Source: Schmidtea polychroa (lineage: Eukaryota). From it: DNA of 64,000 bases. Positions 1,211 through 62,281 of this stretch are shown in pieces. How positions within the stretch are numbered: position 1 is the first letter of the stretch; every line of letters begins with the position of its first letter. Below the pieces are notes generated by a model. That model made no database searches, was not told where the DNA came from, and saw only the letters and a list, made by a program, of their open reading frames with translations. Where the stretch lies: the NCBI GenBank assembly GCA_044892525.1, contig CM097885.1, positions 195,610,001 through 195,674,000 on the forward strand, given 5' to 3'. A program made the translations under genes and the position numbers.

Positions 1211-4200
1211 CTAAATTGATGAATAAATATTTTAACTTTGAAAAATCTTTACTTTTGACTTTTTAATGTCGATGTGATAATCACCATTGACATGAGGTGA
1301 CCAAGAAGCCATTTTATAAAAGTTTCTGGTAATTGAGTGATCTAATTTCCGATAAAAGTCCATTTCATCGAAAGGGATTTCTTTTTCACTAAAAATTATT
1401 CTTTATTTATTGAAAATTTATGAGTAGCTAAAACTTGGATTTTAATAATAGTTNNNNNNNNNNNNNNNNNNNNNNNNNNNNNNNNNNNNNNNNNNNNNNN
1501 NNNNNNNNNNNNNNNNNNNNNNNNNNNNNNNNNNNNNNNNNNNNNNNNNNNNNNNNNNNNNNNNNNNNNNNNNNNNNNNNNNNNNNNNNNNNNNNNNNNN
1601 NNNNNNNNNNNNNNNNNNNNNNNNNNNNNNNNNNNNNNNNNNNNNNNNNNNNNNNNNNNNNNNNNNNNNNNNNNNNNNNNNNNNNNNNNNNNNNNNNNNN
1701 NNNNNNNNNNNNNNNNNNNNNNNNNNNNNNNNNNNNNNNNNNNNNNNNNNNNNNNNNNNNNNNNNNNNNNNNNNNNNNNNNNNNNNNNNNNNNNNNNNNN
1801 NNNNNNNNNNNNNNNNNNNNNNNNNNNNNNNNNNNNNNNNNNNNNNNNNNNNNNNNNNNNNNNNNNNNNNNNNNNNNNNNNNNNNNNNNNNNNNNNNNNN
1901 NNNNNNNNNNNNNNNNNNNNNNNNNNNNNNNNNNNNNNNNNNNNNNNNNNNNNNNNNNNNNNNNNNNNNNNNNNNNNNNNNNNNNNNNNNNNNNNNNNNN
2001 NNNNNNNNNNNNNNNNNNNNNNNNNNNNNNNNNNNNNNNNNNNNNNNNNNNNNNNNNNNNNNNNNNNNNNNNNNNNNNNNNNNNNNNNNNNNNNNNNNNN
2101 NNNNNNNNNNNNNNNNNNNNNNNNNNNNNNNNNNNNNNNNNNNNNNNNNNNNNNNNNNNNNNNNNNNNNNNNNNNNNNNNNNNNNNNNNNNNNNNNNNNN
2201 NNNNNNNNNNNNNNNNNNNNNNNNNNNNNNNNNNNNNNNNNNNNNNNNNNNNNNNGGATTGCCTCTGACTGGCAGTTATTTGGCTTTTTTCTATCGCGTC
2301 TGTGTGCGCGGTTTGGTCTTGGTGTGCGCACACAGGCGCGAGCAATGGATTGATTTTGTAAATCGGTAATTTGTTAATTGTAATTTTTAATTATATTAAG
2401 TTTTAATTAGATTTTGAATTGGTTTGTTTAAAACGGCGATTGTTGGAGAACTTTTAGAAATTGGATTTAAGTTGTGAATTCGATTAATTCTTGGTAGATT
2501 ATGAAATTAGATTTTTTTAAATTGGAAATTTTGTGGAATTTTTTAAAGATTTGTTTAAAATTGAATCATTTGAATTGGTAATGCGAGCGGGAAGTTTTGT
2601 GTATCATTTGGAATGTTTTGGTTGTCAAGAATGTAATCATAGAGGAGCTCATGGAATAATTGTTGTGGTTGATGTTACCGATCAAGATTCGTTTAACAAT
2701 GTTAAAAATAGGCTTAATGAAATCGATAGATATGCGAAAGGAAAAATTCCCGATAAATTAATTGTATCGATTGTCACGGAACTTTCACAGTTGTTGCCAT
2801 CATTTTTCATGATTATGCATGGGATCGAGTCTTCTAAATTCACAGATAAGTTCGTCAATAAAAACAACGATATTGTATTATGTATTCGTGAGGAAATAAT
2901 ATTGAATCATGCTATGTCGGATTTTTCAAATCGATTTGTTTGCAAAACGGAAATCAGAAATTATTTAATTGAAGAATTATCAGTTGTCCGAATTAAAACA
3001 TTTGGGTAAGTCGAAGTTTGAAATCGCGCGTGTGCTTCGACGGAAACTGCAACTGGACAAAATGATATTATTCAATAATGATCCACTGTCCTCTTTGGAA
3101 GAAAATAAAATTATCAACCATTCNNNNNNNNNNNNNNNNNNNNNNNNNNNNNNNNNNNNNNNNNNNNNNNNNNNNNNNNNNNNNNNNNNNNNNNNNNNNN
3201 NNNNNNNNNNNNNNNNNNNNNNNNNNNNNNNNNNNNNNNNNNNNNNNNNNNNNNNNNNNNNNNNNNNNNNNNNNNNNNNNNNNNNNNNNNNNNNNNNNNN
3301 NNNNNNNNNNNNNNNNNNNNNNNNNNNNNNNNNNNTGTGGAATTACATTTAGAAACTATGCATGTAAGCAAACTTGCAATAATTTTTTAGCTTACTTGTG
3401 CTCGGAAAATAATTCATTGAAATAAACGGCTTTCTGATCAGAATGATTATTTTTGAAAAAGTTTGAATTTATGGAAGACTCTTGACTGTTTGTTGCCTAG
3501 ATATTTTTAATAATTTAAAATTAAATATTTATTTAAATGAGAGTCACAAATCTTACAGGAAATCTAAGATTTTCCTGAAACAATTGATTAAGATCAATTT
3601 CATTTGTGGAATTTGGTTTCGAGTTCCGGTGGTTTTCAAGTGACGAACAAGTGCTCGTTGTGATATCGAGGCCAGATAAGCGAAGCATGCACGACTCACA
3701 TTGGTTTTGACGAATCTCTTCAAATGTTCGCTTGATGAATGTTGATAGTACTTTGTTCTGACAAGCCAGCTCCTCTATTTGACTCTATATATTAATAATA
3801 TATTCAATCCAATAATATATTAATAATATATTCATAATATATTAATAATATATTCAATCCAATAATATATTTAATATTGAAAATGTTTTTCAAATTTTGT
3901 TTAAAATAATACTTTGTAGCAAGTCAATGTGCAGAAATGTTCAGAATCAATTAGTAAAAAGTAACTATTTTCAGTTTGTATACAAGAATGGAAAACGGTA
4001 TCATTTGAAATGTGAATGACATCCGAGAATTCACTAACTTTTCTATAGAAAAACACAATTTCTTGCTTTTTTGTATCAAAAAATAATTATTAAAAACACG
4101 AATAAACTTTAGACTAATGAGAATTAAAATTTTTAGTTTATTTTTGGTTTGCATTCTAATACTTGAAAATACTTTGTCACAAGAATATGGATGAGGGATC

Positions 4201-7200
4201 GGATGAGGTATTAACAAATAATAGGAAACAAACTGCAAATGTCATTAATGAATTTATTCATTATTTTCACCATTAATCAACTATTTTCCCTGCGTATTTC
4301 CCTTTTCCATTTGAGACAGTAACCCTATATTTTATGTGCTTGTAGAGCAATTTTGTAAATTTATTTATTGTAAATTGATGTAAAAATTAATTTTATTATA
4401 TTTACAAGAGAAAAATGTAAAAATATTGTAATTCTATGAGAGTTGAATGCGAATGGAAATATTATTTGTTGATGGCCAAAAAGGCAGATGTCCAGTGAGA
4501 GAGTAGAAAAGTATAAAAAATCATAATTTATGAAAACAAAATTCAAACTCTTTTCCACTTTTTGACCTGTTAAATACAAAATTATAAGAATATTTGTTTG
4601 AAACTAAATTTTAGAGGAGAAAGTTTGAAAATATACAATCACATTTTCGAGTTTTGTTTCGTAAAATATTGACTATAGAAAGCTATACCAATTAAGTATC
4701 AATTATGATAATTTCCCATTGTAATTGTAAATATATCCGTCCAATTAAGCTCATTATCTTTTGATTTGATATAAAAAACTTATAATTGAAAACTTTTAAA
4801 AATCCAAATTTTATTACTACTATATAAGATAATATTTATGTTTTGTGTATTTAANNNNNNNNNNNNNNNNNNNNNNNNNNNNNNNNNNNNNNNNNNNNNN
4901 NNNNNNNNNNNNNNNNNNNNNNNNNNNNNNNNNNNNNNNNNNNNNNNNNNNNNNNNNNNNNNNNNNNNNNNNNNNNNNNNNNNNNNNNNAAATATATTTT
5001 TAAAATTAACTACAATTATATTTTACGCCATTTAACATAGATTTTAATGATGGAAATACATTTTTCCAGCAACTTAAAATTAATTCGAAATATGTTTAAC
5101 ACTTTTCACCAACTTTAACAAGAAACTCATAATTAGTTGAAACGAAGACAAAATGTCAAACATCGCACTTATATTGAATGCCAATTAACTTTCACGGTCG
5201 CCCAAACGAGCAAGTGTGAATGTCTTAGTATTGTTAGGAAAAATATTTTATCAATTAAAATTTTGACTCGGTGGGATGTTTTTTGGGAAAATAAAGACCG
5301 AACCGAAGACCTAGAAACTAAATATGGAATATGGTCCTAACATTTTCAAAATAAACAAATTTATAAATAAATATTTATAAATTTAGAACTATATTAAATT
5401 GAAATTCGTATCTGTTTTCTAATTAAATTTCCAAAAATATATTTATTACTTAAATATTTGAAATATGACGCTATTTAGTAATATAATTTTAGTATGATTA
5501 TTAGTAGTATTATTTATTTCATTTTTAAACTCTATATTAACTTTGTATGTTTGTTTGTTTGTATTTTATTTTCAATTTTATCAATATTTACAAAATTTCT
5601 TTCAAAATATTATTAAAATGTTCCTTTCAAAGTAATTTCTTTTTTTTCCTAATATTTAATATTTCATAGCATTGAGCATGCATATAGAAATGTTAATTTT
5701 GAGAGAATGTAAAAGAGTGNNNNNNNNNNNNNNNNNNNNNNNNNNNNNNNNNNNNNNNNNNNNNNNNNNNNNNNNNNNNNNNNNNNNNNNNNNNNNNNNN
5801 NNNNNNNNNNNNNNNNNNNNNNNNNNNNNNNNNNNNNNNNNNNNNNNNNNNNNNNNNNNNNNNNNNNNNNNNNNNTTTTGAAAATATTTATTTAATAATA
5901 CCGTGCAATCAGATTATATGGCCTTAATAATTGAGAAATCTCTCTCAATTAAATTGGCCAATCGGAGAATTAATTCCCAATTTACTCTTAGGGCTGAATT
6001 ATAATGGAACCCAAAGGAAAGCCTAATGAAAATAAGCTCAATCAGACTTAATAAGTATATTATCAGAGAAGTCATTGTGAAAAACCGTAGTTTATGTTGC
6101 AATCAAATCTCATTATCATAATTATCTTCAGCGACTTATTTGGTTAAAGTTGTTGAGAAAACTGAAATTGAAAGTCCATTTGAAATTCAGGCCAGATTCA
6201 CGAAAAGAGATATTCATGCTGGAGTTCGAATGCGGGCAATTAGTTTGATAAAATTTGCTTAATCTTACAATAATTTGACTGAAAAAATATTTTTTTCATA
6301 TTAAAATGAAATTTTCATTTGAAGAGAAATCGAACTTTTTAAATCAAAGAATTTTTTATCTGATAAAAATGTTTTGTGCTGATCGGTAATCTTAAAATTT
6401 AATTGGAATTTATAAACAAATTAACTTTCAATGATTAAGGAAATCTTTATCTGAAATCATTTGATCCTTAATTGGGAAAAAATTTTTATATATAATGCTA
6501 ATATCACTGAAATAAGATTCAAAATTGATAATAATTAATTAAGTAGTTTTGTCGTTCATTTTTCGTCGAAAATAAAAGCTGTAAAAACAATTATAAATAA
6601 TAAATAGTTAAACATACATTGCAACGATTTAATTATAAGAAAACGCCAATCAAACATTTTTTTCACGATATATTTCGACAGTTTTCCTGTCATCATCAGG
6701 TGGGATATAATAACTATATAAATTAAGGATTTTAAACAAATTTATTAATTTTATTAATTATATAAAAAAAATTTTATTTAATAAAGATATTTAATTATTT
6801 TTAAAAATTATAATTAAATTAATATATTATTTTTAAAATTTTAGCATTCAGAATTTAATTTAATAATTTAAAAAATTTTTTAATTATTTAATTTAACAAA
6901 CAACAATCAATACATACAATATACAAAAAAATTATTTATTTTAATAAAAAATAGGTATGTCTGATTTTAAAATTTTATTAAAAAATTTCGATAATTATTG
7001 GGAATGTGTGATTTGCGAGGCGTTGTTGATAGTCATTGAATCCGAAAATTAATGTGCAGAATGCAGTGAATACTTGTGTTTTAAATGTTTTTAAATAATT
7101 TTTTTTGTCGAAATATATAGTGAAAAAAATGTTTGATTGGCGTTTTCTTATAAATGATAACGAATAATTTGTAATCGAATATAAATAAAAATTTCATTTT

Positions 7201-10200: not shown

Positions 10201-13200
10201 CTGCAAAATAATTCTGTTTCAGAAGTAATTATGCCAAGTAGCGTAATATCTTGCATTGAAATTCATAAACATGTAAATTCACTAAATCTCTCCAATTGAG
10301 CCAAGATGTTGAAATGGTTCCGTATTTTCAAAGATATTCCATATGCTTATAATTCGCGAAATAATGTAATAAATCCTAACAATTATATGAACCCGAATAG
10401 ATTTGTTATCTAAAAAGTACATGAATCAAATATGTGTCCAAGAAATAACGAATGAATAATTTGATTGGGATATCTGAATAAATTGGGAGTTTGAAAATTA
10501 ATCGTTACTTTTTATGATCAGGAGTGAACTATGAAATTTAATTTTCGTCAATCAATGAATATTATATTTTTTTAGTTTATAATGATTTATGAAAAAATCA
10601 ATTTGATTATGTAAGTTAAAGTTGTTTTACTTTTACTTGTAAATTTGTAATTTGTAAATTGAAAATTTAAAAGGATCTGTGCTGGAAAATTGTAATTCAA
10701 AAATAAATATTAAGTAGAAATATTTTCTTGATTATTGCAATGTTTGCAAGTATTATTATAACCACAACAATGTTTTTATTAAACCAATGTACTACGATTA
10801 CAAATGCTATGCCATAAACCATTTTTAAAACTAAGTTTGGACTATAAGTATTTAAACATTAAAACCCACATACTAACGGCTATAATTTCCAGGCTATGTA
10901 ATTATTTGAATATGCATTATTTGAAATTTTTTTTTTCATTTGCAAACTAAACCTATGTAAATTTTTAAGTAAAATCAGAATATTGTTACCATTAAGTTCA
11001 AAACTTAAATCCTGTTGTATCAAAAACATAATCTCTTTGTAAATAGCAAATTAACATTTTCAATCAACTATTATTATAAATTGTGTCAGTACATAACGTG
11101 ATTTTTATTACGGTTGTTTTTGAATTATTATTAATACTTTTATTATTACTTTTAACCCTTAATTGCTTTGGTTAGCAAATTTGCAACATACCAAAATTTC
11201 ACGTTTAAATCGCCTAAAATAAATAAGAACTAACCATTTCATAGTGTTGCTTGTGAGCTACAAAGCTATTTAACGGATTTAGTTCATTTTACTTTAGATT
11301 TTTTAAATTATTTTTATAATAATATATTAATTAATTAATATATTAATTAATTTTATTCAAAAAAAATTTAAAAAAATCATTCAATTGAGGGTTAATTTAT
11401 TTACTGCCAAAATAATTTATTACTATAATTTACACATAACATCATATAAAAATACATCTGGAAATGTACTATTAATAAAAAGTTAGTCTCATCCATAATT
11501 TGTATACTTAATTTATTATTGTATTTTTAGTAGCATTACTAAAATTATTCAACAATTTCATATTGTCAATATTGTATTAAACAACAAAACTCCTACAGAA
11601 ATTGAAATTCCTAAATTGGAAGCTAGTAAAAGTAAAAACTACAAACTTAGGTGCCCGATTTACACTTGTAATGTTGTTTTTTCAGTTGGAGAATTTCATG
11701 ATTATTGTATGTTTATTTTAAATTATTTATTTAAATTATTGAAAAGTCATAAATCAAATGATTAAATGTTTTTGTGATTTTTCATTAAAACTGAACATTA
11801 TTTATTGAATATACAATATTTTTTATTTGAAAAACTGCCCTTTTCTGAAGTCTAATTATTTAAACAATATTCATTCTTATTCAGCAATTATAATTTCAAG
11901 TACAAATAGCACCCATTAGGGCCAAAGAGAGGGAGGAGACGGGTATTTTTCCCTGGGTCCGGTTTTGAAAGGAGGCCCGGAGAGGTGCACTAAAATTTTT
12001 AATCGTAACAGAAAAACTTACAGAATTACAACTGTTGATTTACTTCTTTTCGGATGGTAAATCAACATTTTTTCCGTTGATTCTGACCTTAAAGATTTTT
12101 CGATGGATTCACCTTTGATTTATCGTTAAATGACGATTTTTAAATTTTTTTAAAATTCAAAATAACTGTAAAATTATGTATTTACTCTCTTTTAAACATC
12201 AAATCAAATATGAAAACTTTCAAATTAATGAAAAATTCATTGATTTAAAATTTTTGTAAAGATTTTCAGAAAACCTTTGAATCAATGGATTTCACCGCTG
12301 ATTTTTTTCCTGTGTGTATCTAAAATGATAAATTGTCGGTGTCGACCAGAGATTATACGTAACTATGTAAAACATGTCTATTGTTCTCATTTGCAAAGGT
12401 GTTGTAGAAAAAAAAATCAGATTTAGTAGGGACAAAAAAAACCAATTGTCCGTTCAACCGAAAGTATGCTTGCATACAAACAAAATATATAACAATTTAG
12501 ATTTAAAATAAAATTATAACAATCAATAAAGGGCCAGCGTTAATCATTTTACCGGGGCCCGGCCAGGCTTTCCACGGCCCTGGCACACACACATATATTA
12601 ATATTTTTCATTTATTTTTAAAAAAACATATATAAATATAAACTTTGAAGACTTACAAAATAATCATTATTTTCTACCCAAAACTAAGATAAGATAAGAT
12701 ACATTAAGCACACAAGTTTAATTTGGAAAACTGAAAAAATGTATCAAATCACAACAAATAAATAAAAGTAATTGAAAAAATAACACGAGTGATAAATAAT
12801 AATCTTCATTTATCAATTGCACAAATAATTATATTGTGTATAAAATTAATTTTTAAATGTTGCTGTTGTAGTTGCTGTAAAACTGTAAAAACATTCGAAT
12901 GAGCTTTAAATCTTTAAAATACGAGAAAAAATAGATTTTAGAAGTTCAAAGGACGTTTAGTTAGTTCTTTTTAATAAATANNNNNNNNNNNNNNNNNNNN
13001 NNNNNNNNNNNNNNNNNNNNNNNNNNNNNNNNNNNNNNNNNNNNNNNNNNNNNNNNNNNNNNNNNNNNNNNNNNNNNNNNNNNNNNNNNNNNNNNNNNNN
13101 NNNNNNNNNNNNNNNNNNNNNNNNNNNNNNNNNNNNNNNNNNNNNNNNNNNNNNNAAATAATAACAAAAATTTAAAAATAATTTATTTTCCAAAGACGAA

Positions 13201-14648: not shown

Positions 14649-14691
<43 letters not shown>

Positions 14692-17600
14692 TCGCGTCTG
14701 TGTGCGTTTTTTACTTTGACATTGGAATAATTTGTGTGCGCACACAAACGCGGACAATTGTCAAGTTGTTATCACAGTTTTGGATTTCAGTTTTTCAATT
14801 TTTGGATTTATATCAGTTGTTTAAATTTGGTAGGTTCTGTGATTGTTTTGAAAATACAAAGGTTTTAAAAATTCGTTTATTAATTTCAAAATGGAAAAGG
14901 ATATTATGATTGTATGGAGTTTAGAAGATAGAAAACAGAGTGATGTATTATATGGACATTCAGAATCAATAACGAAATTAATCAACGAAACTAACTCATT
15001 CCTTGGAAGTGTGGATTTATGTGATTATGTAATCTCATGGAAATTAAATCTTGATCAAATGAAGTTGAATAAATTCAAATCAGCTGAAGGTTCAGAAATG
15101 ATTGACAGACACATGGAAATTTGGACACGAATCTCTATAAATCGGTCTTTATGCTTGTCGTTATCCCCGAGCATGAGTTATTACTAATTGAGGAATCAAG
15201 TCAAAGGCTTTTAGCTGATGCTTCGAAAGAAGATGATGCTCAATACAAGAGCGAGTTTATCAGAGCCAACATGTTCCGTTCGACATTTAAACATCTAGAA
15301 TAAAAGTTTCAAAACCAGTGAATCAGAAATGTTTTGTAATTTTCTTTGTGAAAATCTTAACGAAATATTTTGCTCGCATCTTAAGAAATGGTCATTCTAA
15401 GGTTACTTATCAGGTGTGAGAATTTCGAAACAAATTTTTACCTAATTGAAAATATAATTAATTATAAAAATTTTAACCGTTTTAAAATTTTAAAATATTA
15501 AATAATATAAAGTGTTAAACTATTGGAAATTGTATTTAATTTTAGCATTAGTTTAAACAAAATATTTTAATAAATAAGTCCAATACGATATTTCTGTATT
15601 TTATTATTCCATATTATACCAAACAAATTCAAACTCACCTGACATTTAATTCTGAATTTTATTTCTTCTTCTAATTGATTTTTCAACAATTCTAATTGAG
15701 TTTTCGATATTTTCGTGCCGAGATTTTGAGGTCGGAAAAACTGGGAACTGAAAAGACTATCGAAAGTTGGCAATTTGGAATTTACAGTTTTTATCAATTC
15801 GCCAGAAAGGTTGGAATTCATTTCCGATAACTAGAGGAAATTTGAAATAACATTAAGCTAGTTGATTTAATTTGTTGTTTATATTAATAATTAAAAATCT
15901 TTTTATCATAATATTGACGATATCCGTGAATTTAATCTCAGGTTACAGACATCAATTAACATTCATTATACAAAGATAAATATAAACTATAATTATGAAT
16001 GTATTTATATAATCTACTATGAATTTCGAGTTCATAATTTAATATTTCTAGACGTAAACAATTTAAACTATAAATAATGACATGCAGGATTCTGAAGAAT
16101 TTTAACGAAGAAAGAGGATAGGAATTTTGTTATTCACAATTCGCTGTATCAAAAGATTAATACTTGAAAAGGACTTCTATATTGCATTTATAAGACTGTA
16201 TTAATAATTTAATATGATTATCACTAAGTGATGTGTTTTGTATAAAATAACCTTTGTTATAAATAAGTAACTTACAATAATTTATTGTATATATATATAT
16301 ATTACACACTTAAAAATTAAGAAATTTCTAAGAAGTCGTGAGAGGAAATTCCTATACTATTCAGAAATAACTGATGTATATTTCATATAAGAACATTTTT
16401 CAATTTTCACCTCTGATTTCTTTTCAATTGACATTGTATTGTTCGTTGATATTGTTTGATAAATTATTTATTAGTAACTTACATCCAATTTTATACATAT
16501 TGAAAATAATTATTATTTTAAAATACATAAAATAAATGATAAATAATTAATAGATAATGAAATGTATTTTAAAATATACTTATGCCAGAGATTTCCGAAT
16601 TAGAGGACAAATAAACGGATGTGTCCACTAAAAGTATAATTTCTTTAAGCATATTTTAATTTTTAGAAACATTTCACTCTGTAATTAAAGCACACATGCA
16701 TAAAGATATATAATATTTTGTTTGGCTGAATAAAATTTGTTACAACTATGTCTCTTCTTAACAGTAGGTGTGAGGCGTTTTGTAATTTGTATTTAAATAA
16801 TGGTATGATGTTGTGCATGTTTGATTGTATGCTGAAATTCTTACTCATACATTAATTATTATTTTTTAGAAACTCCTCAAACAAATTAACGTTATAATTT
16901 GTTTTAATAATATGTGTTTTTTATAATAAACGTGTTTCAGTTATGGATTCTATTAATACCCGTAGCTCTGTGGCTAATAGTAGGTAAGGCAAATATTTTA
17001 TAAAAAAAACAATGCTCATAGTTTGAAATCTTTCTGTAATACCCTAGAATTTTATTATTAACGGATATTATTATTGAATAAATATTAAATAATTATACTG
17101 TGAATATTATTTATATGAACAAAATTTTATCTTTAAAAAATTTACTTATATTATTTTATGAAATTACTGGAGAACCAAAGATTTTAATTTAAAAAGCTAA
17201 AAGTTTAGAAAAACCACTGGCTTTGCTATACATAAATCAGTTATATTAAAGCAAATTAACAGTAAATTTAAAATTATAACTTTTTCTGAATGAGTACTAT
17301 ATAACAAAATGAATGAACGAGCTTGATTTATGTTAAATTTGGTAGTTTAATCAAATATTACACAGCCTAGTTTCCAGCAGGAAATGGAGAAACAAAAATT
17401 TTGATTTTTTATATTTATCTACTACTTTCAATACATTTATGCTTGAAAATATCTAATTTCTGTTTCAAATTCCTATTTGATAAAAATAAAATAATATTTA
17501 ATGATTCCCATGTTTTATTTATGGCAAAAAAAGAAAATTGATACATTTACAAATTCTGGTATGTTCAGTTAAACAAATAAATTGATAAGTTGATCATAGT

Positions 17601-29600: not shown

Positions 29601-32600
29601 ATTTTAAATGTATATTTTGATTACAAATTATATAATGCTTAATTTAAAGACTTATATTGAAACATTGTACAAAAATAGTAATAAAATGCTAAAATCTATC
29701 ATGTATTCAATATAGAGTAGGAATTTCCAAACGTTTGGCGACCAAGAGCTACTTTTAAAAGTGGAAATATTTCGTGACACTCTCTACTAGTAAAGAATAG
29801 ATTGGAAAACAAAGATAATATTGACCAATCTTTTTATGTTCTATATTAAATTTAGAATTATAAAACTATCAGAGGAAACTGAAAGTAGCGGAGTAAAAAC
29901 AGTAGTTTATAAAAAAATATCCCAAATCCCGAAATTGTTCATTTCTTGATATATTTAGAGGTGTATAGAACCTTTGATCTAGAGTAAATTTATCAATAAA
30001 ATTTTAATCATATTTTATTGTAATTATATTGAGAGAGTAATTGTTCATGATTATATATGTGAAATTTTCTGTAACAAAATGATAAAATATTAGATGATTT
30101 ATTTTTATATTATGTTATATTATATATTATATTATGTTATTGTTAATTAAAAAATATATTAGAAGTATCCTTTTCCTCATAAAATAATGTATTTATTAAA
30201 TTTATGAAAAAGATGAATATGAGCGCAAAAAATAAAGTAATAATTTAATTGATATTGTATTTATTAAAAGCTTAACTATGAATCAGTAAATATATCGATG
30301 TTTTTTTGATATTCACGAATTTTCGGCACTGCCTTTTTCAAGTGATGTTTATAATGCAAAATTTATAAAAATAGTAAATTAAATTTTTGATATAAAAGGT
30401 GCAAATTATTTTAATTTTATAATTTGTTGGATTACAATAAAATTAACTATTTCTTTGATAAGTATTTTATCAAAGAAACACATAAAAAATTTTAAATTTT
30501 ATTTTATTTACTCGAATCCTTAAAACAACTTTCAATTTCAATTATTCCTGACAAATATTGCAATAATCATGTTGCTCTTTTGCTCAGTTTCTCATTGAAC
30601 TGAACTTTTGCAACGCATTTCCACATTTGAATTCAAAATCTATTTAATGTCTTGTCACTTCAATCAAATCTTAAATTAAATTTATTTTACAACATTGACA
30701 AATATAAACAAAAATAATAAACAAGAAATGTTAATTTAGTTAAATTNNNNNNNNNNNNNNNNNNNNNNNNNNNNNNNNNNNNNNNNNNNNNNNNNNNNNN
30801 NNNNNNNNNNNNNNNNNNNNNNNNNNNNNNNNNNNNNNNNNNNNNNNNNNNNNNNNNNNNNNNNNNNNNNNNNNNNNNNNNNNNNNNNNNNNNNNNNNNN
30901 NNNNNTAACAAAAATTTTTAAATTAGTTAAATTAATAATCACAAAAGACAATATGATAATATAAATAATACTAATTATAATAATAATTATTATTTATATT
31001 ATTATTATCTTTTATATTAATTTTTACTATATGAAAAATTCTTGTTTATTAATTTTTTTTATATTTGTTAATGTTGTAAAATAAATTTGATTTATTATTA
31101 TTATTATATGTTTCTAAGTTTTCAAAATATAATAATTCAAATTTTAAAATACTCAAAAAATTTTAAAAAATTTAATTAAAATTTAATTTTTCAATATTTC
31201 AAATATTTTCATTATGATTTTACTAAAAATTGGTTATTCAACAACAAGTTTGGCTCTGAATATTAGAAATACTATATAATAATTGATTGGTATCGGAATT
31301 ATTTATAGAAATTAATTTAAATAAATAGGAAAGCCATTTCTGCTGTTGTTTATTAATTGATAATATTTCGACCTAAAATAATCACTGTTCAATCAAATGT
31401 GAAATTTAACTGATTTATTTTTTTTTATTTTTCCTTATGAAACTTTTAAAATTATAACCATTAAAACTAAATAATAAACTTTTAAAAATTATTAATAATT
31501 TAAATTAGTTATAATTTTATCAATATTTTCTGGCGTATAAAATTTCGATGAAAATAAAGTTAAGAATAAAAAATTATAGTAATCCCATCGAAGACAATAT
31601 TATATTTCGATTCCAGCGAAAATGACTTGTAAATTTGATCGACAGTATCTATTTCTGAAAGTAAGTTTACCGTTTTTTTTCAAATCATGTATTCACATCT
31701 ATGATTGTAAATAGCAAATTTCAATAACTTTTTTCACTACTTTTATATTCATTTGCGCTATCAATCATTTACTTTATGCGAGCCATATTGACGATTTTCC
31801 TTGATTCTTAATGATATCTAAATTAAAACAGTAATTTTACTGCCAAGTTGACAAAACGTCATTGCACTGTCAAACTCGGTGGTTTTGTTTTCCAGAAAAG
31901 ATGTCGTCAAAATCATTTTTAATTATTTAGTTTGTATTATTGTAATTGTCCTCTGGGGACCCAAATATAGAATAATAATTATTATATTCTTTTTTAATAT
32001 TTTATTCGCCACCTGCTTTCTCTTACTCAAAATTATTAATTTTCCGATTTTTCAAATATTTAATTCATTTATGGACATAAATTTTGTCTGTACTGCTTTA
32101 TAATTTTATTTTATTTTGCACTCAAATTTTATCCATAGATATTTTATTTGTTTTTATTTACATAATTCCGACATTATTATATAATGGATTAAAATATTTT
32201 TTGGCGCGAAGAGAAATCTTCGCGTTTCTTGCATAGTATTGATGAGAGCCAAAAGCTCGAAACTAGTTTACTATTGGGATTTGCACTGGGTATCACAAAG
32301 CTTGTAATCTTTATCTTATTATTATATAAAGAATTATAAATCTTAAAGACCAAAAATACTATAAAATTTACTTCTTTTTCCCTCTTTTTTTGTGGAAGTT
32401 TGCATGATTAGGTCATCTAGAGTTGATAAAGATTCAGATTGTGAATCACTTTGAGCTTCATCGTCAATTTTAACTAGATCGGCAGATCTAATAGGTTGAG
32501 CAGATTGAGAAGAAGAAATTTTCTTTTCTTGGGAAGAACTCGTTATACTTGAATTTTGATTTCTAGTTTCTGTGGAGTTTTCTTCGTCGATTGTTGGATT

Positions 32601-35600
32601 ATATTCTGAGTTGCTTTTCGTGTCTTCGGACTTTTGATTGATTCGATGACAAACATCAAATGCTTGTCCAACTGTACGGACGATTTTCATTGCTTCCATC
32701 TTTCAAGAAATAAAAAGCAAAAAGTTATTTATAGAATAAATTTGATGGATGTTTTTAGAATAATTCTGTTTTTATTTTATAGTACTTTTAAATCAGGAAA
32801 ATATATGGAAAATATTTCAGACTGGATAGGTTGTTAATTTTTGTCAAACTTGAACATATTAAGGATTTGAATTTAAACTAATTTCTAAGTGTAAAACAAA
32901 GATAGAAAACAGTATTCAGGTAAATATTTGGTTTTTTTTATATATTTTTAAACTCTCTATATTAACTTCAGTTTGTATGTATGAATGTTTGTATGGGCCG
33001 CGAAAATCTTGTGACGGCAAATTAACCCACTCCCCGTAATCGGATCGAGCTGAAATTCGGCAGATAGATTCGTTGTCGAGGACAATGCATTCTTTCAAAC
33101 TTTAGGATGCTCTTCAATTTTTTTTTCAATTTTTTCAATATTTACAAAATTTCTTTCAAAATATTAATAAAATGTTCCTTTCAAAGTAATTTCTTAACAA
33201 GGTGATTTTGCGTAATATTAAACATTTCATAGCATTGAGTACGCATATTGAAATTTTAATTTTTAGAGAATTTTAAAATTTTAACATAAAGAGAGTTTTA
33301 AAAACTATGTTTTTAAGGTAATTATTTTGTAATATTGTTTTATCGATTTTTGTATAATAATAAATATGTAGAAAGAATAGATGTTTTGTTTAAATGAGAC
33401 GATTTAAATGGAAAAAAAGAAACAAAGATATATTAATTATGAATAAAGATATATTAGTTTCATTGGAACATTTTGATAGAAAGAACATGAATATAATCGA
33501 AGGTTCGATAAGTTTAAACTATTATGCCAATTACATAGCCATAATGCAAAAAAGGAACATTTACTGATTCTTCAGAAGTTTGTTGGAAACAAACTGACGA
33601 GTAAACCATTTCAAATTGGCGAAAACCTTAATATTCATCTACAAGAGATGAAATATTTGACTTACAATGCTGAAGATTATTTGATGAGCATCATCATAAA
33701 TTCATTACCTTCAGAAATGTCACGGGAAGTCACTCGTTAAGGGGCAACCACAACTGAAGTTATTGGTAACTTGTCACTTGACAATACGGCATCATATGTC
33801 ATGCAAAGGAAATTTCCTTCAAATTCAAAAAGTATGAAATGTTGGCGACGCTCTAGTATAGATAGTCTGATTTTTAAAATTAAAAAAATTTATATTTTTA
33901 TTGATTAAAAAAATATCAATAAATATTTTATAATATAAACAAAACCAATGAGTAATATACTATATAACATAAAGTAAAATTAATTTAGCACTGTATATGA
34001 TAAAGCTATTAATCTTCAAAAAGCATCCAACAAATATTCCTTTTCATAATTATTGTCGTGACAACCATATTCTAAAATCGAGATAGTTAATCTTTTCCTC
34101 AATACTCATGCCTCTTCGTTTTCCCATATTGACTTTAATATTCACCCACCATCCCTCGAATTTATTAGTGTGAACATTCGTGACCTGATCTTTAAAATGT
34201 AACCTTTTGTTTACCAATAAATGCACATAATTTTGGTTCGGAATAAGTTCAAGGTTCTAGGTTTCGGTCAAATAGGCAGAACATCTATCGCTAAATATTA
34301 TAGTTTCTGGTTTTATGAAACGCTGCATCAACTCACATAAGGTCTCTCTTTTTCATTGCAAAACAATTTGGTAAAGTTATCTTTTAGTCTCACATTTGAT
34401 ACCACCAAATAACCAAATTTCCGGATATCGTCGGTCACGGAAGTATTTATACTTCTTTGAAATCAAGGAATAATATATTTCCCCAACTACTCCTTCTCCG
34501 CCATCATAAGCTCCGCGTCACTAAGTGTTAATAACGCCCCCGAACAAATTTCAAATAAAATATTATTTCAATTTGCACACGTTTGATTTGCTATTCCAAT
34601 CATCGACTGAGTACGGTTGGAATATCTTGATATGGTTGGAATATCTTGCAACCAAATGTAAGTAAAAATCACTAATTTCTTTTATGACAATTTACTTTTA
34701 GAAAAGAATTACCATCTCTTATAAAAATTTGTCTGCATTTTTGGGGACACTGAAAAACATACGCGTCAGAAAGTTTTTTTCGTAGTGCTCTTGTAGCAAG
34801 AACATGTTTTTTCTTGAAGATAATGCAGTAATTTTTCTTCATCGTTTACTACTTTATACAAAGATGTCTGTAATTTTCATTATGGTTACTTAAAAGTTTT
34901 ATTATATATTCAGTTGTAATTATGATTTAAATATTAATCAATAAAAATATAAATTTTTTAATTTTAAAAATCGGGCGACACATAATAAAGTATCGCTGAA
35001 ATGTTTCATTTGTAATGAAAACCATTTAGCTCGCAGTTGTCCGAATCAAAACTATTCAGGAGTCTCACTCTGTCCCAAAGAGGTTTTAAAAGATAATAAA
35101 TGAATCGGTAAAACAATGTTTAATATACACGAGTTGTTCAATTACGATAATGCGAAGAGATCCAATCAAATCACGGGGCGTTCGAGTAGGTTAGCAGATT
35201 GATCTAGCAGATTGAGGTAAGACCAAACTTGAAGTAAAGGGAAAGTATTTTATTGTCGACTGTTTTGTTTCTAGAAAGATAATATTTAGTTATGATGTGA
35301 TATTAGGCAGGAATTCTATTATTACACTATTTTTATTTGCTATTAACTGCATCGAATGTCATCTAAACGTAGAGAATACATGGAAAAGATTAGCCATTGG
35401 TGTAACAAAAGTCAATCAAAGAATAAAGATTAATTGTGGAGCTTCTAGTTTTGCAATTTGCCGCGAAATAAAGAATAAAAGTGCAGATGAAATATGCAAT
35501 CAACTAGAACAAGTGTTTTTGAAGAACGGATATAAACAAAATATTTAATTCTATGTATTTTATTTTAATATTCTAAACATATTAGCTCTGAAATAGATTT

Positions 35601-37993
35601 TTATGTATTAATAGATTGTCAAAAATTTTCAAAGTAAAGAAGATCAAGAAAGAGGGATTAAAATATTTTAAAAGAAAATAAATTTAGAAATCACCTCAAT
35701 TACAATTTATATTGGCCTTCCTAAATTTAGTGATAGTAAATGTATCATTTTGTATCATTTATTTGTAAATTTAAAAAAAATAAATTATGTAAAGTTCTAA
35801 ATAAATGAAACTAAAAAGTACCTTTCGTAAAGCTTTGAAAACATTGCATTTGAAATTAGTGGATTTGCTGTCTCTAGCGATGTAACTGAATATTTTAAGA
35901 TCCTGTGAGTCGTGTGATACATAAAAGATTCTAAATTAGATCAAAAGTCATACTTCAAACAAAAAAAAAGATTTTCATTACCTGTATATTGGATGATGCA
36001 TTAAAAGCAAACCTGTGGAAGAATTGTTGACTGGATGGTCAGAAGAGGGGCCGTTAAGGAGATTAAAGCTTTGTGATAATCTGAGTTTTATTGGAGTCTG
36101 AATTAAGAGAAAAATTATTAATAAATTTTAAAAATAAATATTAACTCATTGGCTTTGTTTTATTAAGTTAATTTAAAGTTTACTTATTTTAATGTCCTAT
36201 AATGTCCTTATAGGACATGATAAGACAGATAAAATTCTTCTAAACTTAATTATTAATTATATTACAACCTATTAATGCTGATTATTTTTTTCAAAACTGA
36301 ATATTAAAAAGATTAAATATAACTAGACATCAATAATAATTTTTACAGAAACTTGATGAATGTCTTAAATATGCATGTTAATACTTATTTCTAAAATCAT
36401 AGTATTCGTAACTCTTTCTTTCGCTATAACTTTCCTCTGGTTTTAGTCTTAGGAGGTATAGATGTTTAATTCAAAGAATATATCATCAAAATATCTCTTC
36501 AACTAAACGATATCTCACTAATTTACTAGTTATAACGGGTTTACTGAAAGAAGACTGGAATACATCAGATAACACATCACATCTATAAATAGTTAAATAC
36601 AATTTAGATGCATTAAACATGACTAATTTGAGTGGATGCACACATACACGTGTTATTAATAGCGACATCCAAAAAACATGAAGTTTATAAATTAAACTTT
36701 GAAAAACTATAGCGTCTAAGATCTGTATATTAGATCTTTCATAGTATAAAAATTGCATTTAAAAATTTTATAAGCTGTAGATTTTCAAAGTAGTTTTGAT
36801 TGATTAACTAGAAATATTTTATCTCTTAAATTTAGATAATATATTTCTAGTTCAACAACCAAAACTACATTGAAAATTATCAAATGAATCCCTCGTAAAT
36901 TGAAAATTTTGAAAATGGACAATAAATCTAAAATCCAGACACACCATTTTAGGAAATTTGATCTTTTTCATAAATCCAAAGTTTGATTTCCCCTTCAAAG
37001 ATTTGTTGAAAAAGATTAAAATTTTATTTTTTAAATGCGGATTAAATCTTAATAATTATAAAAAACATTAAAATAATTCAATTAATAAAATGCAGGTATT
37101 TTTGTCGAAATTTTTGGTACTCATATTGATGAGTTCGGCTGCATTCGGAATATTTGGTTTTCGTATTAATTTTAAATTACTTGGTAAAGTTTAAATAAAT
37201 AGCACAATAATAATCATATTATTTATTTAACTAAGTATTATTTAAACAAATTTGAGACTCAATATACTTGTCAACAATATCCAGTTTGCAAAATGAATTT
37301 GGAATCAAAATTTAAATAATTTCTTCAGCTAACTTTTTTACAATTTCACTAAAATCTCTGCTAAACATTTTCTTTCAATTCTTTTCATAAATTTTATTAA
37401 ATATGAATTGTTAATTTTTTAATTCTCACACCAAACATCCTTTCTCTTTCTCAATAAATGGATAAAATAATTTTTATAACTTTTAAAACTACAGCAGTAT
37501 AAACAAAAGGCATAAACGTGTTTATTGTTTTCCTAAAACATTTGTCATTTGGAAAGGGAGATTATTTGGGTAATATAAATTCAAATGAAACCATTATAAA
37601 ACATACCAGAATTGTATGCTGGAGTAATAAAATAAATAAATAATGTTAATATTTTTTTAACATTTTACTTGATAGATATCATTCAGTAGAAATTATAATA
37701 TAATAATTTTATATCATGAATACAATAGTTTTTATCTATGTCACTATGAACGTGCAATTTTATTAATAATATTAAAAAAATTGGTTGGAAAGAAATGGAA
37801 ATAATCAAACATTAAAACTTAGAAAGTTTTGCATTATTCGTCTATGAATAAAATTAATATTTTAAAATATTTATTTCTGTTTAGCATTGACTACTAAATA
37901 ATCATCCATAACAATTATTCAATTACATATTAAATTTAGATATTAAATTTTAATTATTTAATTAATTAACTTAATTTAGACTTAATTAATAAT

Positions 37994-38024
<31 letters not shown>

Positions 38025-41000
38025 AAATTATTAATTGATATTTCTAGCTCAGAATATTAAATGGAATTATGAAATTGTCTAAATTTTATAAATATTGTAT
38101 TCCGAAATTTAACTTAATTTTTGATACAAAATTGGATATAGTAAATGTATAAGATTCATCATGGTCATTTTTGTTGAATTTAGATTCGTAAATTTGTGCT
38201 TTTTATGGATTAATAAATAAATTAAATTTAGCCAAAATTTGTTTTGTGAAATTTTTATAAATTATTAATAAAATAAGCTTAAAAAATATCTTTTAAACCA
38301 AATAGAAACAGTTCCACTTAACTCGCTCACCTCTGGTTGGTATGAGCACTTAGATTACACTTTTGGCTGATGACTGCTAAATAATAGTAAATATTATAAA
38401 TTTTTGATTTTCACTATTAAAATAAGAAAATGAACCACATAATCATACAAAAATATACATGATGAAAGTAGCATATTAGTATTCAAAGGAAAAATGTGTT
38501 GTGTTTTGTGGGTATTAAGGACTAATAAAAATGAAATATATGCAGTATTAAATCACATTTTCCTACTTATGGCGATTATGTGAGCGAACATTAATTAAAT
38601 GATCCATCCACATGTAACCAAAAATGTAGGGTCATGAGTACGATCAATGGAGGGTTATGTTATAAATTAGCCGATAAATTAATTTAATTAAAAATCATTT
38701 AATTGAAAATCATTTAAGAAATTTATCATTATAGGGTTTTCCACATAATTTAATCATCGTTTCATATAAAATAATCAATTTAAAGGCAACATAAAATATG
38801 TTTTAACTGTTCTTAACATTATGTAATTACTAATTATTTTTTGAAAGTAATACGTATAATTAAATTAATTATATGGAAAATCCAATTTAAATTAATAAAC
38901 TCCAAAATAAAAATATATTCAACGAATTTGGTTATATTTATAACAATAAAAATTTAAAATGATTAAAAATTGCGGATTAAATACATCAACTTTCAAATGG
39001 ATAAAATATAACTTAAATAGATACAGGGTTGAATAAAATATAAACATCAATCAACATTCACTTAAAAATGTTCTCGACGTAGAGCTCTAAAAATACTGCT
39101 TCACATGCTCATAATAGTGATTATAATCCTTTTCCGAAATCGTAAAGCTGATTTGAAGTATTGCAGCATCTCCAACTGTATTAGAATTCAATGCCTTGAT
39201 AAAACTCTTCAACTGCGCGAAAGTTTGCTCAATGGGTTCAGTTGTGGACTGTATGATGGAGAAATTTCAATGTATTCCCATATGATTCTATTAGAATACG
39301 TAATCGTTCTGCTTTGTGGATGCTGCAATTATTCCTCATCTCTAGAAATTCCAGCTTCAGTAGTTATTTTTCCAAAGAGCCGAAAAATCTTTCAGTATTA
39401 TATGGGAATCATAAGTTTTGTACCAAAGCAATTCGTTTTTATGTATTACAGCAAAAGTTGAAAAATTACTGCTTCTAAGCGCCGCGACAGTTTTCCTGGG
39501 ACTTGTACCGATTAGACTACGACCATATGATTTCCTTCTCAAAGATGATATTCCCATTTCATCGATATAAATGGCTTTGTTTTCGTCCATTAGTACCATC
39601 GATTGTGCAATATTTCTTTGAATATTTCTGGAGTCAAAACGACCAGTTTAAAACTGTAACAAAACAACTTAAGAGTTCGGTTTATAGTACTTTTTGAAAC
39701 TTGTAACGCGAAGGTTTGCTCAATCAGTTGTTTCATTGTTTTCGGTGTTGTAGAAACGTCTTCGGCAATAATTTTATCGATAAACATTTTAATCTTACTA
39801 GTTATTTTTTTATCTTTTGGCGTATGTATTCGAATTGATTCCACTTTCCCATTCAATTTGAGCACTCTGACTACATTGGTCACGGTTTTATAAGGAATCT
39901 CGCATTCAATCGCTGTTGTCGAAATTGTCTTTCTCAGCATATATTACTGAATCAGACAACTGTTTTTAGAATTCCTTCTTGGCATGGAGGATTTAATTGA
40001 AAAATTTAATGATTAAAAGGAAGCGACATTTAGCAGCATCTATTTATCTTATATTTTGATTATTTTATGTAAATTGACGATTGTTTTATTTGACACTTGA
40101 TTTATTTATATGAAACTCTGTTGAAATTATAAACTTAGACATTATTTCTGACATCTTATTTATGATGTGTAAATTCTCGTTTGCAAACGTTAAGAACTCT
40201 GCAAAAAAATAAGAATTTTAATTTTCTCTAGAATATTTTCAAGAAAAATATTTTTTATTATAATTAAAAATAAATAAATTTTTTGACGTTCTCACAAATA
40301 TTACATTTCAGAATATGAATGTTTAAAATTTTTTCCAAAATTTTGTATATATACTGTAGACCTAAGAAACAAAAATAATATTCATTCGTTCCTATGCATA
40401 CTGAATNNNNNNNNNNNNNNNNNNNNNNNNNNNNNNNNNNNNNNNNNNNNNNNNNNNNNNNNNNNNNNNNNNNNNNNNNNNNNNNNNNNNNNNNNNNNNN
40501 NNNNNNNNNNNNNNNNNNNNNNNNNNNNNNNNNNNNNNNNNNNNNNNNNNNNNNNNNNNNNNNNNNNNNNNNNNNNNNNNNNNNNNNNNNNNNNNNNNNN
40601 NNNNNNNACTAAATTCAAGACAAGAATTTTTGGCTTGAATGATCAGTGGTTCTTGCTTTTTTTGTTTGAATTGACTTATTTATAAATTAGTAATTAGAAA
40701 TTTTTCAAGTAATTTTATTTATTCTGACCATATATACATTTTATATAATGATTAATAGTTTTCACTTTTTCTTAATTAAATAATTGAAATTAATCTGCTT
40801 TATTATTTTATTATTTTCACTATTATTACCTTAATTTATTAGTGAGACTTAGAAATTTAACTTTGTTAATTACATATTTAACAGTTTTTTATTTTTTATC
40901 TAATTACTTTAATTATTATTAAATATTTAACATAACATTTGATTAACACTTAATTGTATCTCAATTAATTGCCTGTGGATTTTTCAGAAGCAAATTATTA

Positions 41001-44000
41001 TTAATTAAAATAAAAAACTATTAATTATGAAACAAATAATACTAAATTTCAGTCTCATGTTAATAGGTGAAACTTCTATATAATGATTAAATTATTTAAT
41101 GGCTTTTGGATTTATTGTGTTGTCATTATAATTTTAAATTATTAATTTTGTTTTAATTTATCTCTTAATTCTTGATTTAATTTTTAACAATATATCAATC
41201 TTTCCAATTTTTTCACAACACCTTTTTACAGTGTTTCAATTTATTTAAAACATTAAAGTCTTTGAATTACATTTTAAACAAGATAATATTTAATTATTTT
41301 ATTTTCATGATTACTATCTTGAAATATTAAAGAAAAATAATTCAAATATTTTTTGTATTAATATTTACAAGATCCTTACGAGAATTATCACTTATATATT
41401 TTTTATTAAACTGCTTTGATTAATGTTTCTTTGGTTGGAAATTCAATTACCCGTAACTAATTTTCACAATTTTCTCCAAGCAAACTTTACTGTTTTCACT
41501 TCATCAGCTCTCTTTTCTAATAAAAGAAAACTTGAAACTCATTACAGAAAAACGCAGAAAAATCAATAAATAAAACTTTATTCAATTTTCAAAATCAGCA
41601 TTAGTTATACTTCAGATATAACTACTTTCACTCTCCATAAAGCCTGCAATCAGTCCTTTGGGAGCTTTCCAATTTGCTTTTCAATTAACTAGTCATTTTC
41701 TGCCTTAGTAGTGTCCGTGTAACTTCATTACATATCCTAATTGTTCACCTGGCTACGCAGCAGATATCGTTTAATTTACTTGGTCAAACTGTCTAATTTG
41801 ATTACCCAACTTTGGCTGCAGCAATTTTCAAAGAAACTCTCATTTCATAAATGAAACTTTCTCAAAATTTGTAAATGTCAAAACAAATGATGCATTAACT
41901 TGTTTTAATCAAATGAATTATTAATGATGGTAATCATCTTTAATTTAGATTTAATATTTCACAATTTCAATTCAAAAAATTTAGTTTTGATAAATTTTCG
42001 AGAAAATGGAAAATCATAATAGAAACATTTTGTGACTGTCTTTGATTGTATTAATAAAAAATATATCAGGGAGAACTTTAATTATATTTCCTATAGAAAT
42101 TTATTCTATGGAATTTCTGTGAATGGAATTCCTGAAAGATGATTCATTTGTTGAAAGATTTTTTAATTGAATTTTCTGGAAAGATTTTTTATAATGGAAA
42201 TCCATCGGTGATTTGATTTGATTTGATTTTTACTGTCTGCTGTCGTTAAGTAAAATTTTATTTTGTTATTGTTATTATAATTAATTACACAGAATTCATA
42301 CAATATACATATGAACCATCAAATGTAGCAGCAATTTTAAGATGACCAAACGTCCCGCTTTTGGCGATACTGTCCCGATTTTTCACGATTTATCCCGCGT
42401 CCCGCAACGTTTTTCAAAAGTTCCGACTTTTAGAATTAAGTTAAATTTTATATTTATGAAAATCATTGTTTTGCATTCTAAGAATCCTACGGACTACTAA
42501 GACTAACATATTGCTTTTCTTACCCAGTTACATTGTATTTGTTTCTCAGTTTTCTTCGTGTTCGTACTGCGCGCTAGGAAGCTAATTAAACAAATAAATA
42601 TTACAAATCTGCTACTTACCATAGAAAATTAAGGTAAGTAATTTATTTATATATTTCATAAATACATAAATTTTCTTAAACTTAGCTTAAAATACTCGTA
42701 GTCTTTAATTTTATGTTGATAACAAAAAGTATTATCACTGACCCTAATCTTAAAAGAAATTTTAGAAAGAAATATAAAAATAAAATTCTGCAAATATTTT
42801 AAGTTAATCAAACTAATAATATGTCAAGGAATAAAATATTATACAATTTTTTTATATTTATGTTAAAAATCAAAAAATATTACCATATTATTTTTATTCT
42901 ATATGAAAATTTTTGTTGATACCCCCACCCTTCAAAGTTGTCCGCTTTGTCCATCTAAAAGTCTGGTCACATTAAGCAATATATATTTTATAATTGAAGT
43001 CTCACCTAAGGCGGAGAACATCTCTTTAGTAGTTTATATTTTATAAAAATTAAGGAAAAGATATTAAAAAGAGTTGGTCAATGGAGAAAAAGATCAAAAG
43101 ATTTCATTGAAGTTTTTTAAAAATAAAAGTATATATATAAAACCTTTAAAATCACTGTTTATTGTTTTGTTATATGGTTATTTTGGTATTTTTCCGTTAA
43201 TTATTCTTTAGTTATTACAAATTAAAATTTTAAATAAAAATATTTTTATATGACAAATCATTGGTAGTAATTTGTTTTATCACATTGATTTTGTTTGTTT
43301 TAACTCTACTGTGATTTTCTATCAAACAATTCTATCATAATTCCTAATTTGAAATATACGTGGTAAGGCTTTGAAGTCCTTAGATTTACATACAAATAGT
43401 GAAGTTAGTGGAGCCAGATTCTTTATTATTAATAAGACTAATATGTAGGATTTATTTCTCAACATAACTTTCAATAACCGTATATCATTAGTTTGAAAGC
43501 CATTAAGAAGATTTCTTGCCTCTTCTCTACAAGAAATTTCTCCATATTTTTCTTCAAATTATGCTTCAATTCAAATATTTTACCTGTCAAATCTTTCTTC
43601 CGATGATTGAACAAACAAAAATCCCTAGACGCAAGATCTCGGTTGTATGTGGATGGTCCAACTGTAAAAACACACATTTTGCTATTGCTTCCTGTTTTCG
43701 ATAAGACATGTGAATTGGAGTGTTGTCTTGGAGAAATAAAGGTCCTGGTTTCGTAGCTTGTTTCGTATGCCACTGGGTTCATTGATCAAGGTGGTGTAGT
43801 GCTTTAATCAACCCTCAAAAATACACTTAATCTATTGAATATTATTTTTCCAATCTCCTTTTTAAATAAAAACTGATTTACGTTTATAAATTGCACACTG
43901 CATAAAAAATTGTTTAAATCGCCGAATGACTGTAATTAAATATATATGTGTCTCATTATGAAATATACAATAACTTTGTTCTAACTTTATATTTTTTCTA

Positions 44001-62170: not shown

Positions 62171-62281
62171 CTGTTGATTAAAGGAATTGATTAATATTAA
62201 TAAGCTCAATTGTGTGTTTTTGTTTTCGGAGTGAAACACGTTTTCAATTTATTTGTGAAATCATACTACATCCTATTAGTA

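Follow-up and report, generated by a model that had tools for sequence, protein, structure and literature searches.

A stop-free reading frame of Schmidtea polychroa that joins fragments of LMO and Rab1 genes without a linker

How can internal pieces of two unrelated genes come to be read as one uninterrupted protein? The question is raised by a locus of Schmidtea polychroa situated in a stretch of 64,000 nucleotides (nt) (GenBank assembly GCA_044892525.1, contig CM097885.1, positions 195,610,001 to 195,674,000 of the forward strand), which is referred to below as the window. The locus contains an open reading frame (ORF), ORF A, in which a fragment of an LMO-type LIM domain runs directly into a fragment of the small GTPase Rab1. 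An initial annotation, made from the letters only, had described a seamless in-frame joint without linker. Translation of 2533-3009 (+) reproduced this joint and its peptides to the base, and both domains scored above their Pfam cut-offs. The main ATG is at 2581, from which ORF A comprises 142 amino acids (aa) (2581-3009), whereas the stop-free frame starts at 2521 and spans 162 codons (2521-3006). AT-richness is pronounced throughout the window (24.4% GC, its 12 runs of N not counted), and its two largest stop-free frames, ORF A and the 206-codon frame of ORF C described below, both exceed the longest frame in every one of 200 window shuffles (maximum 146 codons).

The first piece (2569-2642, +) is a fragment of the second LIM domain (LIM2) of LMO/Beadex type. 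It was recognized by the Pfam profile LIM (PF00412; aa 9-37, profile positions 7-35 of 58, 26.0 bits versus a cut-off of 22.9) and, in phmmer searches of PDB, by LMO4 and LMO2 (from aa 9 or 10 to 39, E 5e-4 to 4e-3). The second piece (2643-2766, +) matched the Pfam profile Ras (PF00071; aa 35-76, profile positions 68-109 of 162, 26.3 bits versus a cut-off of 21.6), Rab1 and Rab1A in PDB (aa 35-85, E 1.8e-12 to 1e-11) and positions 77-124 of a Rab1 profile of 203. It covers beta4-alpha3-beta5 (GAHG...DKLIV) of Rab1/Ypt1, with a one-residue insertion. These profile ranges agree with the earlier view that both pieces are internal fragments unable to fold alone. Relative to the donor families, ORF A is identical at about 80% (20 of 25 aa) to the LIM2 domain of an insect-type LMO (protein P0030) and at 74% (32 of 43 aa) to Rab1 over the retained segment; the identity of 26 in 31 residues to Rab1A, given in the initial annotation, was exact in the phmmer alignment. 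In the translation of 2533-3009, residue F13 begins at 2569, and R37, encoded by the AGA at 2641-2643, is common to the LIM and the Rab1 homologies; a linker is absent. The Rab1 stretch had been thought to stop at 2736, with the alanine of RYA (2734-2736); the homology in fact continues to DKLIV (aa 78, nt 2766) and possibly, although weakly, to aa 83 (nt 2781).

The remaining 80 aa of ORF A (2767-3006, +) had no detectable homology. Nothing credible was found for this tail in Pfam or PDB, no strong match appeared among the top 150 of an exhaustive HMMER search, and the Rab1 profile (score -1.3) ruled out that the tail is diverged Rab1. With the same profile, no further Rab1 pieces were found in the other frames. 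Immediately after the Rab1 piece, at 2767-2793, lies the 27-nt sequence gtatcgattgtcacggaactttcacag, which starts with GT and ends in a pyrimidine-rich CAG; its length is divisible by three and too short for a typical animal intron, and it may be an intron-like relic or chance. The stop codon of ORF A is contained in GG|GTAAGT (3004-3011, +), which reads like a consensus 5' splice site. Possibly, ORF A is a first exon; what follows it enters a run of N at 3124. Single-sequence AlphaFold models reached mean confidence values (pLDDT) of 43 and 35, too poor for a fold search.

Could the product work like either of its donors? A LIM domain has eight zinc ligands (C-x2-C-x16-23-H-x2-C-x2-C-x2-C-x16-21-C-x2-(C/H/D)), and ORF A keeps four of them, H-x2-C-x2-C-x2-C; the position of the upstream CxxC reads FFKD and the downstream half of the domain is replaced by Rab1. 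Small GTPases are characterized by the motifs G1 (GxxxxGK(S/T)), G3 (DTAGQ), G4 (NKxD) and G5 ((E)TSAK), none of which is present in ORF A: G1 and G3 would precede the retained segment, the NKxD position reads S-I-V-T-E, and the tail is devoid of Rab similarity. Unlike its donor families, ORF A thus consists of fragments with neither a complete zinc module nor a nucleotide-binding motif, and its product cannot serve as a LIM domain or a GTPase. Changes at residues that never vary in functional Rab1 (VVYD to VVVD, KQWL to KNRL, and the loss of NKxD) indicate relaxed GTPase constraint. Any function of the product would be new, or there is none, and the ORF may be neutral.

The possibility that ORF A is an old, conserved and functional LIM-Rab fusion gene would fit its long open frame and 5'UTR-like leader (UTR, untranslated region). 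However, neither a full-length relative nor another protein combining LIM and Rab came up when 1.84 billion representatives were searched exhaustively with HMMER; all 680 matches were Rab or LMO, and the top matches covering several stretches of ORF A were wrong predictions of LMO or Rab genes in which exons are repeated. A word-index protein search returned only Rab1 proteins for the whole of ORF A and no candidate for the LIM region (aa 1-40), and an exact-protein look-up found no record of the ORF A and ORF C proteins as called genes. This suggests that the fusion is lineage-restricted, or else unannotated. As both domains have also lost all their catalytic and structural motifs, an ancient functional gene is hardly credible.

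The initial annotation had explained the fusion by whole captured exons joined by splicing. The exon boundaries relevant to this proposal were taken from gene loci of other organisms, namely L002, L006 and L007 for LMO (the exon in the latter two was found with a 24-residue probe from protein P0133) and L001 and L003 for Rab1. In all three independent animal LMO loci the LIM2 exon ends with TGC AAC/AAT CAC/CAT AG|gt in phase 2, and the following exon of L002 opens with A TTC TGC; the phase-2 LMO intron predicted at CNH-AG|A is therefore real. The corresponding letters of the window are tgt aat cat AG|A gga gct, and the change to Rab1, at 2642|2643, falls on the very nucleotide at which the LMO exon ends. 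The other end of the LIM piece behaved differently. When the 126-nt LMO exon of L002 was compared with the window, similarity was confined to the last 74 nt (52 of 74 identical), the part that ends at the conserved CAT AG, whereas the first 52 nt matched at 13 positions, which is chance level (window-wide mean 11.7). A whole-exon LIM piece, as suggested by a 'GN' match in register, was ruled out on this basis. Because only these 74 of the 126 nt match, the LIM piece begins within the exon, unless the preceding part is still there in the 5'UTR but too decayed to be recognized.

In the insect-like locus L002, the LIM2 exon and the exon after it are each present in many tandem copies (32659-33600 and 37144-38400), and protein P0030 is mis-predicted because of them; these copies reflect either an artefact of assembly or a genuine amplification of exons at this locus.

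For Rab1 the outcome depended on the gene used for comparison. The arthropod-type exon, known from L001 and about ten independent exon-fragment proteins, starts with cag|C TAT TAC CGA GGC, encoding (S)YYRGAHG, and ends with DYTTAK|gt. Relative to this structure, the window's piece lacks the first 8 nt of the exon and approximately the last 70 nt. In L003 there is a phase-2 acceptor inside the Arg codon right before GAHG, and in other lineages further exon ends were seen at KLLV(G), NEKV and KLLVGNK; Rab1 intron positions are lineage-specific. A phase-2 Rab intron at YYR/GA, which had been considered plausible, thus exists in L003, whereas the arthropod-type exon starts 8 nt upstream of it. Taken end by end, and always with reference to these heterologous genes, an exon boundary was matched by the 3' end of the LIM piece but not by its 5' end, by the 5' end of the Rab1 piece in the L003-type structure only, and not by its 3' end in the arthropod-type structure. 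A description of the pieces as whole exons is therefore not supported: judged by the exons known from other species, the LIM piece corresponds to the final 74 nt of 126 and the Rab1 piece lies inside the arthropod-type exon.

These boundaries bear directly on an origin by splicing, in which captured LMO and Rab1 exons were juxtaposed, transcribed, spliced from the LMO donor to a Rab1 acceptor and then fixed by retroposition or intron loss. The acceptor would be either a true intron site or a cryptic TATTATAG|A created by AT-rich codons for YYR; an AT-rich Rab1 sequence TAT TAT AG|A would make a plausible acceptor of this kind. The switch at the exact phase-2 exon end conserved in three genomes is the main point in favour of such an origin, the phase-2 intron of L003 in the Arg codon before GAHG is another, matching phases would account for the maintained frame, and both pieces are sense-oriented. 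What splicing leaves unexplained is the absence of the first 52 nt of the LMO exon and a Rab1 piece that stops short of the arthropod-type exon end and, in this exon type, begins 8 nt after the exon start. Moreover, it needs more steps (juxtaposition, splicing and reverse transcription), and neither a donor exon-exon junction nor a poly(A) tract or a target-site duplication was seen in the window. We regard splicing as a serious rival explanation of the joint, albeit a rather unlikely one.

The opposite expectation, breakpoints inside donor exons with microhomology, had been put forward as the mark of DNA-level template switching. It held in part: the 5' end of the LIM piece, the 3' end of the Rab1 piece and, with the arthropod-type structure, its 5' end are intra-exonic in the heterologous genes, the 3' end of the LIM piece is on the exon end, and a microhomology of 4-5 nt, ATAG(A), would exist between the LMO mRNA (CAT AG|A) and Rab1 if the donor codons were AT-rich. 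Both pieces are sense-oriented and in frame. No piece crosses a donor exon-exon junction, each lying within one exon of the heterologous structures, and an RNA intermediate is consequently neither demonstrated directly nor excluded.

The reading that we tentatively prefer, as a serious possibility that falls short of being probable, is that ORF A represents a mosaic gene or proto-gene, confined to this lineage, which arose through copy-choice joining of partial gene copies and is expressed from the hairpin and leader located upstream of it. The joining would have taken place by template switching between partial templates. These would most simply be mature mRNAs copied by the reverse transcriptase of a retroelement, with replicative DNA repair as an alternative; mRNA templates are favoured because both partial pieces lack introns, run in the sense direction and can have a short overlap in common. 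The switch from LMO to Rab1 would have occurred at the overlap ATAG(A), coinciding with the LMO exon end, and hairpin and leader would serve as promoter and 5'UTR, leading to transcription and probably translation of the mosaic.

Retroposition mediated by long terminal repeats (LTRs) is known to yield multi-gene chimeras of partial mRNA copies with microsimilarity at the junctions (PMC5131818). ORF A resembles these chimeric retrocopies, including the hybrid ORF of maize Bs1, in that partial intronless sense pieces of at least two cellular genes are united in one new frame, that a short junction overlap is possible and that the product would be immediately transcribable (PMC5131818 and papers by Elrouby & Bureau to which it refers). 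It differs from them in that neither an LTR nor a primer-binding site nor internal sequence of a retroelement was seen beside it, the flanks of its module being runs of N. Beyond the upstream hairpin stretch of about 70 nt no repeated flank was found, and microsimilarity at the junction is suggested by the common Arg codon. As for the signs of a processed retrocopy, neither piece contains a donor junction, no poly(A) tract follows the other two modules of the window (B and C, see below), and the 3' end of module A meets N at 3124. Template switching by long interspersed elements (LINEs) produces another type of chimera, the bipartite and tripartite retro-pseudogenes of U6-L1 type. The likeness to these would lie in a sharply bounded, short, structured 5' element followed by unrelated RNA-derived sense pieces. 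The differences are that the hairpin matches no Rfam family, that poly(A) and target-site duplication are missing and that 125-230 nt of non-homologous leader separate hairpin and ORF.

The hairpin of module A (2294-2341, +) has two 17-nt arms (2294-2310 and 2325-2341) and a 14-nt loop. Its covariance score was 69.7 bits, its DNA fold had an energy of -20.4 kcal/mol (z -6.8), and a conserved RRCAATKG follows on its 3' side, to approximately 2352. The stretch between hairpin and main ATG, leader A (2351-2580, +), is presumed to be a 5'UTR. It is rich in T and G and poor in C (T 47%, G 18%, C 3%) and contains a single ATG, where 5.5 were expected. The lone upstream ORF (2501-2581, 26 codons) has its stop codon overlapping the main ATG (TAATG), an arrangement which is typical of termination-reinitiation but could be due to chance.

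Is this architecture peculiar to ORF A? The hairpin motif had four matches in the window, all on the + strand, against none expected, and an unfiltered covariance-model search of both strands of the whole window found no further copies. Module B starts with a hairpin at 14688-14756 (+; covariance score 89.4 bits), followed by a C-poor leader (14765-14890), a 98-aa ORF (14891-15187) and a coding-like stretch in another frame (15106-15303), the parts after the hairpin spanning 14765-15303 (+). The N-terminus of ORF B is weakly WD40-like (PLRG1, E 0.05) and the second stretch gave a weak match to leucyl-tRNA synthetase (E 0.6). A perfect (TA)n microsatellite (14650-14691) adjoins the 5' arm of hairpin B, and upstream of this hairpin no sequence is in common with the other modules. 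Module C begins with a tandem pair of hairpins (59590-59648 and 59686-59742, +), identified by motif scan, fold and covariance model, which precede a C-poor leader (59755-59953) and the 205-aa orphan ORF C (59954-60571), which together occupy 59755-60571 (+). ORF C had no relatives in Pfam or PDB, and its interpretation as a RING / cold-shock / RanBP2 mosaic found no support there. It ends two codons past CAG|GTAAAT (60560-60568), and both this sequence and the GG|GTAAGT of ORF A may be 5' splice sites. A constant exon common to alternative first exons was ruled out, as the presumed splice donors of A and C differ in phase.

The stems of the hairpins are GC-rich and 15-17 bp long, with arms 14-30 nt apart, and always lie upstream of an ORF. 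Of 60 stem cells 59 are paired, and U-G accounts for four of the five deviations, a pairing that only RNA of the + strand tolerates; with four copies this bias is only a hint. Conservation between the modules is limited to the hairpin stretch of about 70 nt, and no common sequence was found downstream. The leaders (125-230 nt) cannot be aligned with one another and are nevertheless alike in composition (T 47-49%, G 17-21%, C 3-7%), a composition found in only eight patches of the window, three of which are these leaders. Together they contain 3 ATGs versus 11.1 expected (P ~0.0005), the outcome expected of selection on a scanned 5'UTR. At its end every leader meets the ATG of an ORF (142, 98 and 205 aa in A, B and C, respectively), and these ORFs are unrelated to one another. 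No Rfam 15 family reached its gathering threshold over the window, permissive scans giving sub-threshold generic hairpins. The hairpin motif was absent from viral contigs, and among metagenome contigs it occurred only in two GC-rich bacterial chance hairpins (L004 and L005). No tRNAs were found in the window.

A more far-reaching interpretation is that hairpin and C-poor leader form a dispersed, possibly mobile promoter/5'UTR cassette placed before new mosaics and orphan ORFs, a platform of gene birth of which the LIM-Rab1 ORF would be one translated product. At present we consider this doubtful.

Alternatively, the fragments could have been captured as DNA and accumulated at this locus through Pack-TIR- or Helitron-type elements (TIR, terminal inverted repeat), ectopic recombination or replicative repair involving repeats, and ORF A would be a by-product that stayed open. 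The abundance of transposon remnants in the window, the partial nature of the fragments and the second, out-of-frame coding-like piece of module B agree with this, and there are precedents in animal Pack-TIRs (PMC8277862) and in the composite proto-gene fragment hubs of Drosophila (bioRxiv 10.64898/2026.08.09.743762). Gene capture by Pack-TIR/Pack-MULE elements and Helitrons (PMC8277862, PMC4224331) likewise unites host exon fragments of different genes and can give chimeric transcripts. However, the termini of those elements flank the cargo and introns are usually kept, whereas the hairpin arms here are adjacent to each other and upstream of the ORF, do not enclose it and have no second end. 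The cassette was accompanied neither by terminal inverted repeats around captured DNA nor by a target-site duplication, as would be expected of Pack-TIR/Pack-MULE elements. Helitrons start with 5' TC, carry a 3' hairpin followed about 10 nt further on by CTRR, and insert between A and T. Inspection showed no consistent CTRR (YYAG on the other strand) at the proper distance from the four hairpins, and there was no conserved element body on either side. The Drosophila 'tinkering loci' (bioRxiv 10.64898/2026.08.09.743762) resemble the window as kilobase-scale, transposon-rich regions in which dispersed gene fragments give rise to composite proto-genes; they differ in that their ectopic recombination leaves common non-coding flanks, and no conserved hairpin/leader cassette is described in the sections consulted. 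Further points tell against DNA-level capture: no second terminus, target-site duplication, CTRR end or common downstream sequence was found, Rab1 follows immediately at the LMO exon end with no donor intron or flank, and the frames of 162 and 206 codons together with the ATG-depleted leaders favour expressed units over debris. Such an origin is the other serious rival, if a rather unlikely one.

Module A lies in a short island of 868 bp (2256-3123) between runs of 802 N (1454-2255) and 212 N (3124-3335), a situation in which a chimeric contig or library artefact has to be considered. Against this, the junction is located within contiguous sequence, an overlap of 1-5 nt cannot mislead a k-mer assembler, the architecture of hairpin, leader and ORF recurs twice in long gap-free sequence, and both pieces have diverged from any functional donor, unlike those of a fresh chimera. 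An artefact is therefore very unlikely.

Several observations weigh against copy-choice joining and expression from the cassette, our preferred reading. The microhomology and the intra-exonic breakpoints rest on gene structures of other species, and Rab1 introns vary between lineages. That a random switch within this exon would hit the LMO exon end exactly is a coincidence of roughly 2-3%, by our own estimate, and this breakpoint is a better fit to a splicing-based origin. Retroelement sequence, a poly(A) tract or a target-site duplication are not visible, the flanks of module A being runs of N. To keep a frame of 162 codons open through at least 2-3 junctions takes luck or selection. For the hairpin, a promoter role is suggested by composition and position only, and since ORFs B and C are devoid of secure donor homologies, any tie between the cassette and the formation of mosaics is tentative.

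The rest of the window is rich in repeats. Two short inverted-repeat elements (49343-49611 and 56945-57186; I5, I12, I16 and I21) lie in opposite orientations and have common TIRs starting with TACTCCCTCTGTCC, which we take to resemble the ends of Stowaway-type (Tc1/mariner-derived) miniature inverted-repeat transposable elements. Decayed remnants of Tc1/mariner-type transposases are found at 39360-39943 (-), 43474-43785 (-) and 62280-62492 (+). In the first, Pfam gave weak HTH_Tnp_Tc3-like matches (39593-39943) and DDE_3 (39360-39647, E 0.005); the other two are mariner-like by eye only and had no Pfam match. Inverted-repeat pairs at 9068-9166/10932-11030 (99-nt arms, 1.8 kb apart), 6633-6680/7106-7153 (48-nt arms, 98% complementary, 425 nt apart) and 22426-22547/30244-30307 suggest non-autonomous DNA transposons. 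A direct repeat of about 150 nt (5563-5714 and 33117-33277; families D2 and D4) is 85-96% identical, its first copy entering a run of N at 5720. GC-rich islands with GGGGCCCGG-type motifs (12524-12600, 47228-47296 and 47424-47502), set in a background of 20-25% GC, probably belong to one repeat family. At 32346-32702 (-) the translation reads as the last part of a PTB/PID domain (E 0.025 with Pfam PID, short of the cut-off) and a Ser/Thr-rich low-complexity tail after it; this is probably the only ordinary host exon of the window.

ORF A combines a base-exact coincidence with an exon end on one side with apparently intra-exonic breakpoints elsewhere, so that the species' own donor genes should separate splicing from copy-choice. 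In-frame mosaics of several donors such as this one represent rare natural cases in which the shuffling of domain fragments is caught early. If the recurrent cassette in front of unrelated orphan ORFs proved to be genome-wide, it would point to a common regulatory module for young genes, and a cassette family of this kind, if real, would constitute a hitherto unreported path by which gene fragments become expressed proteins.

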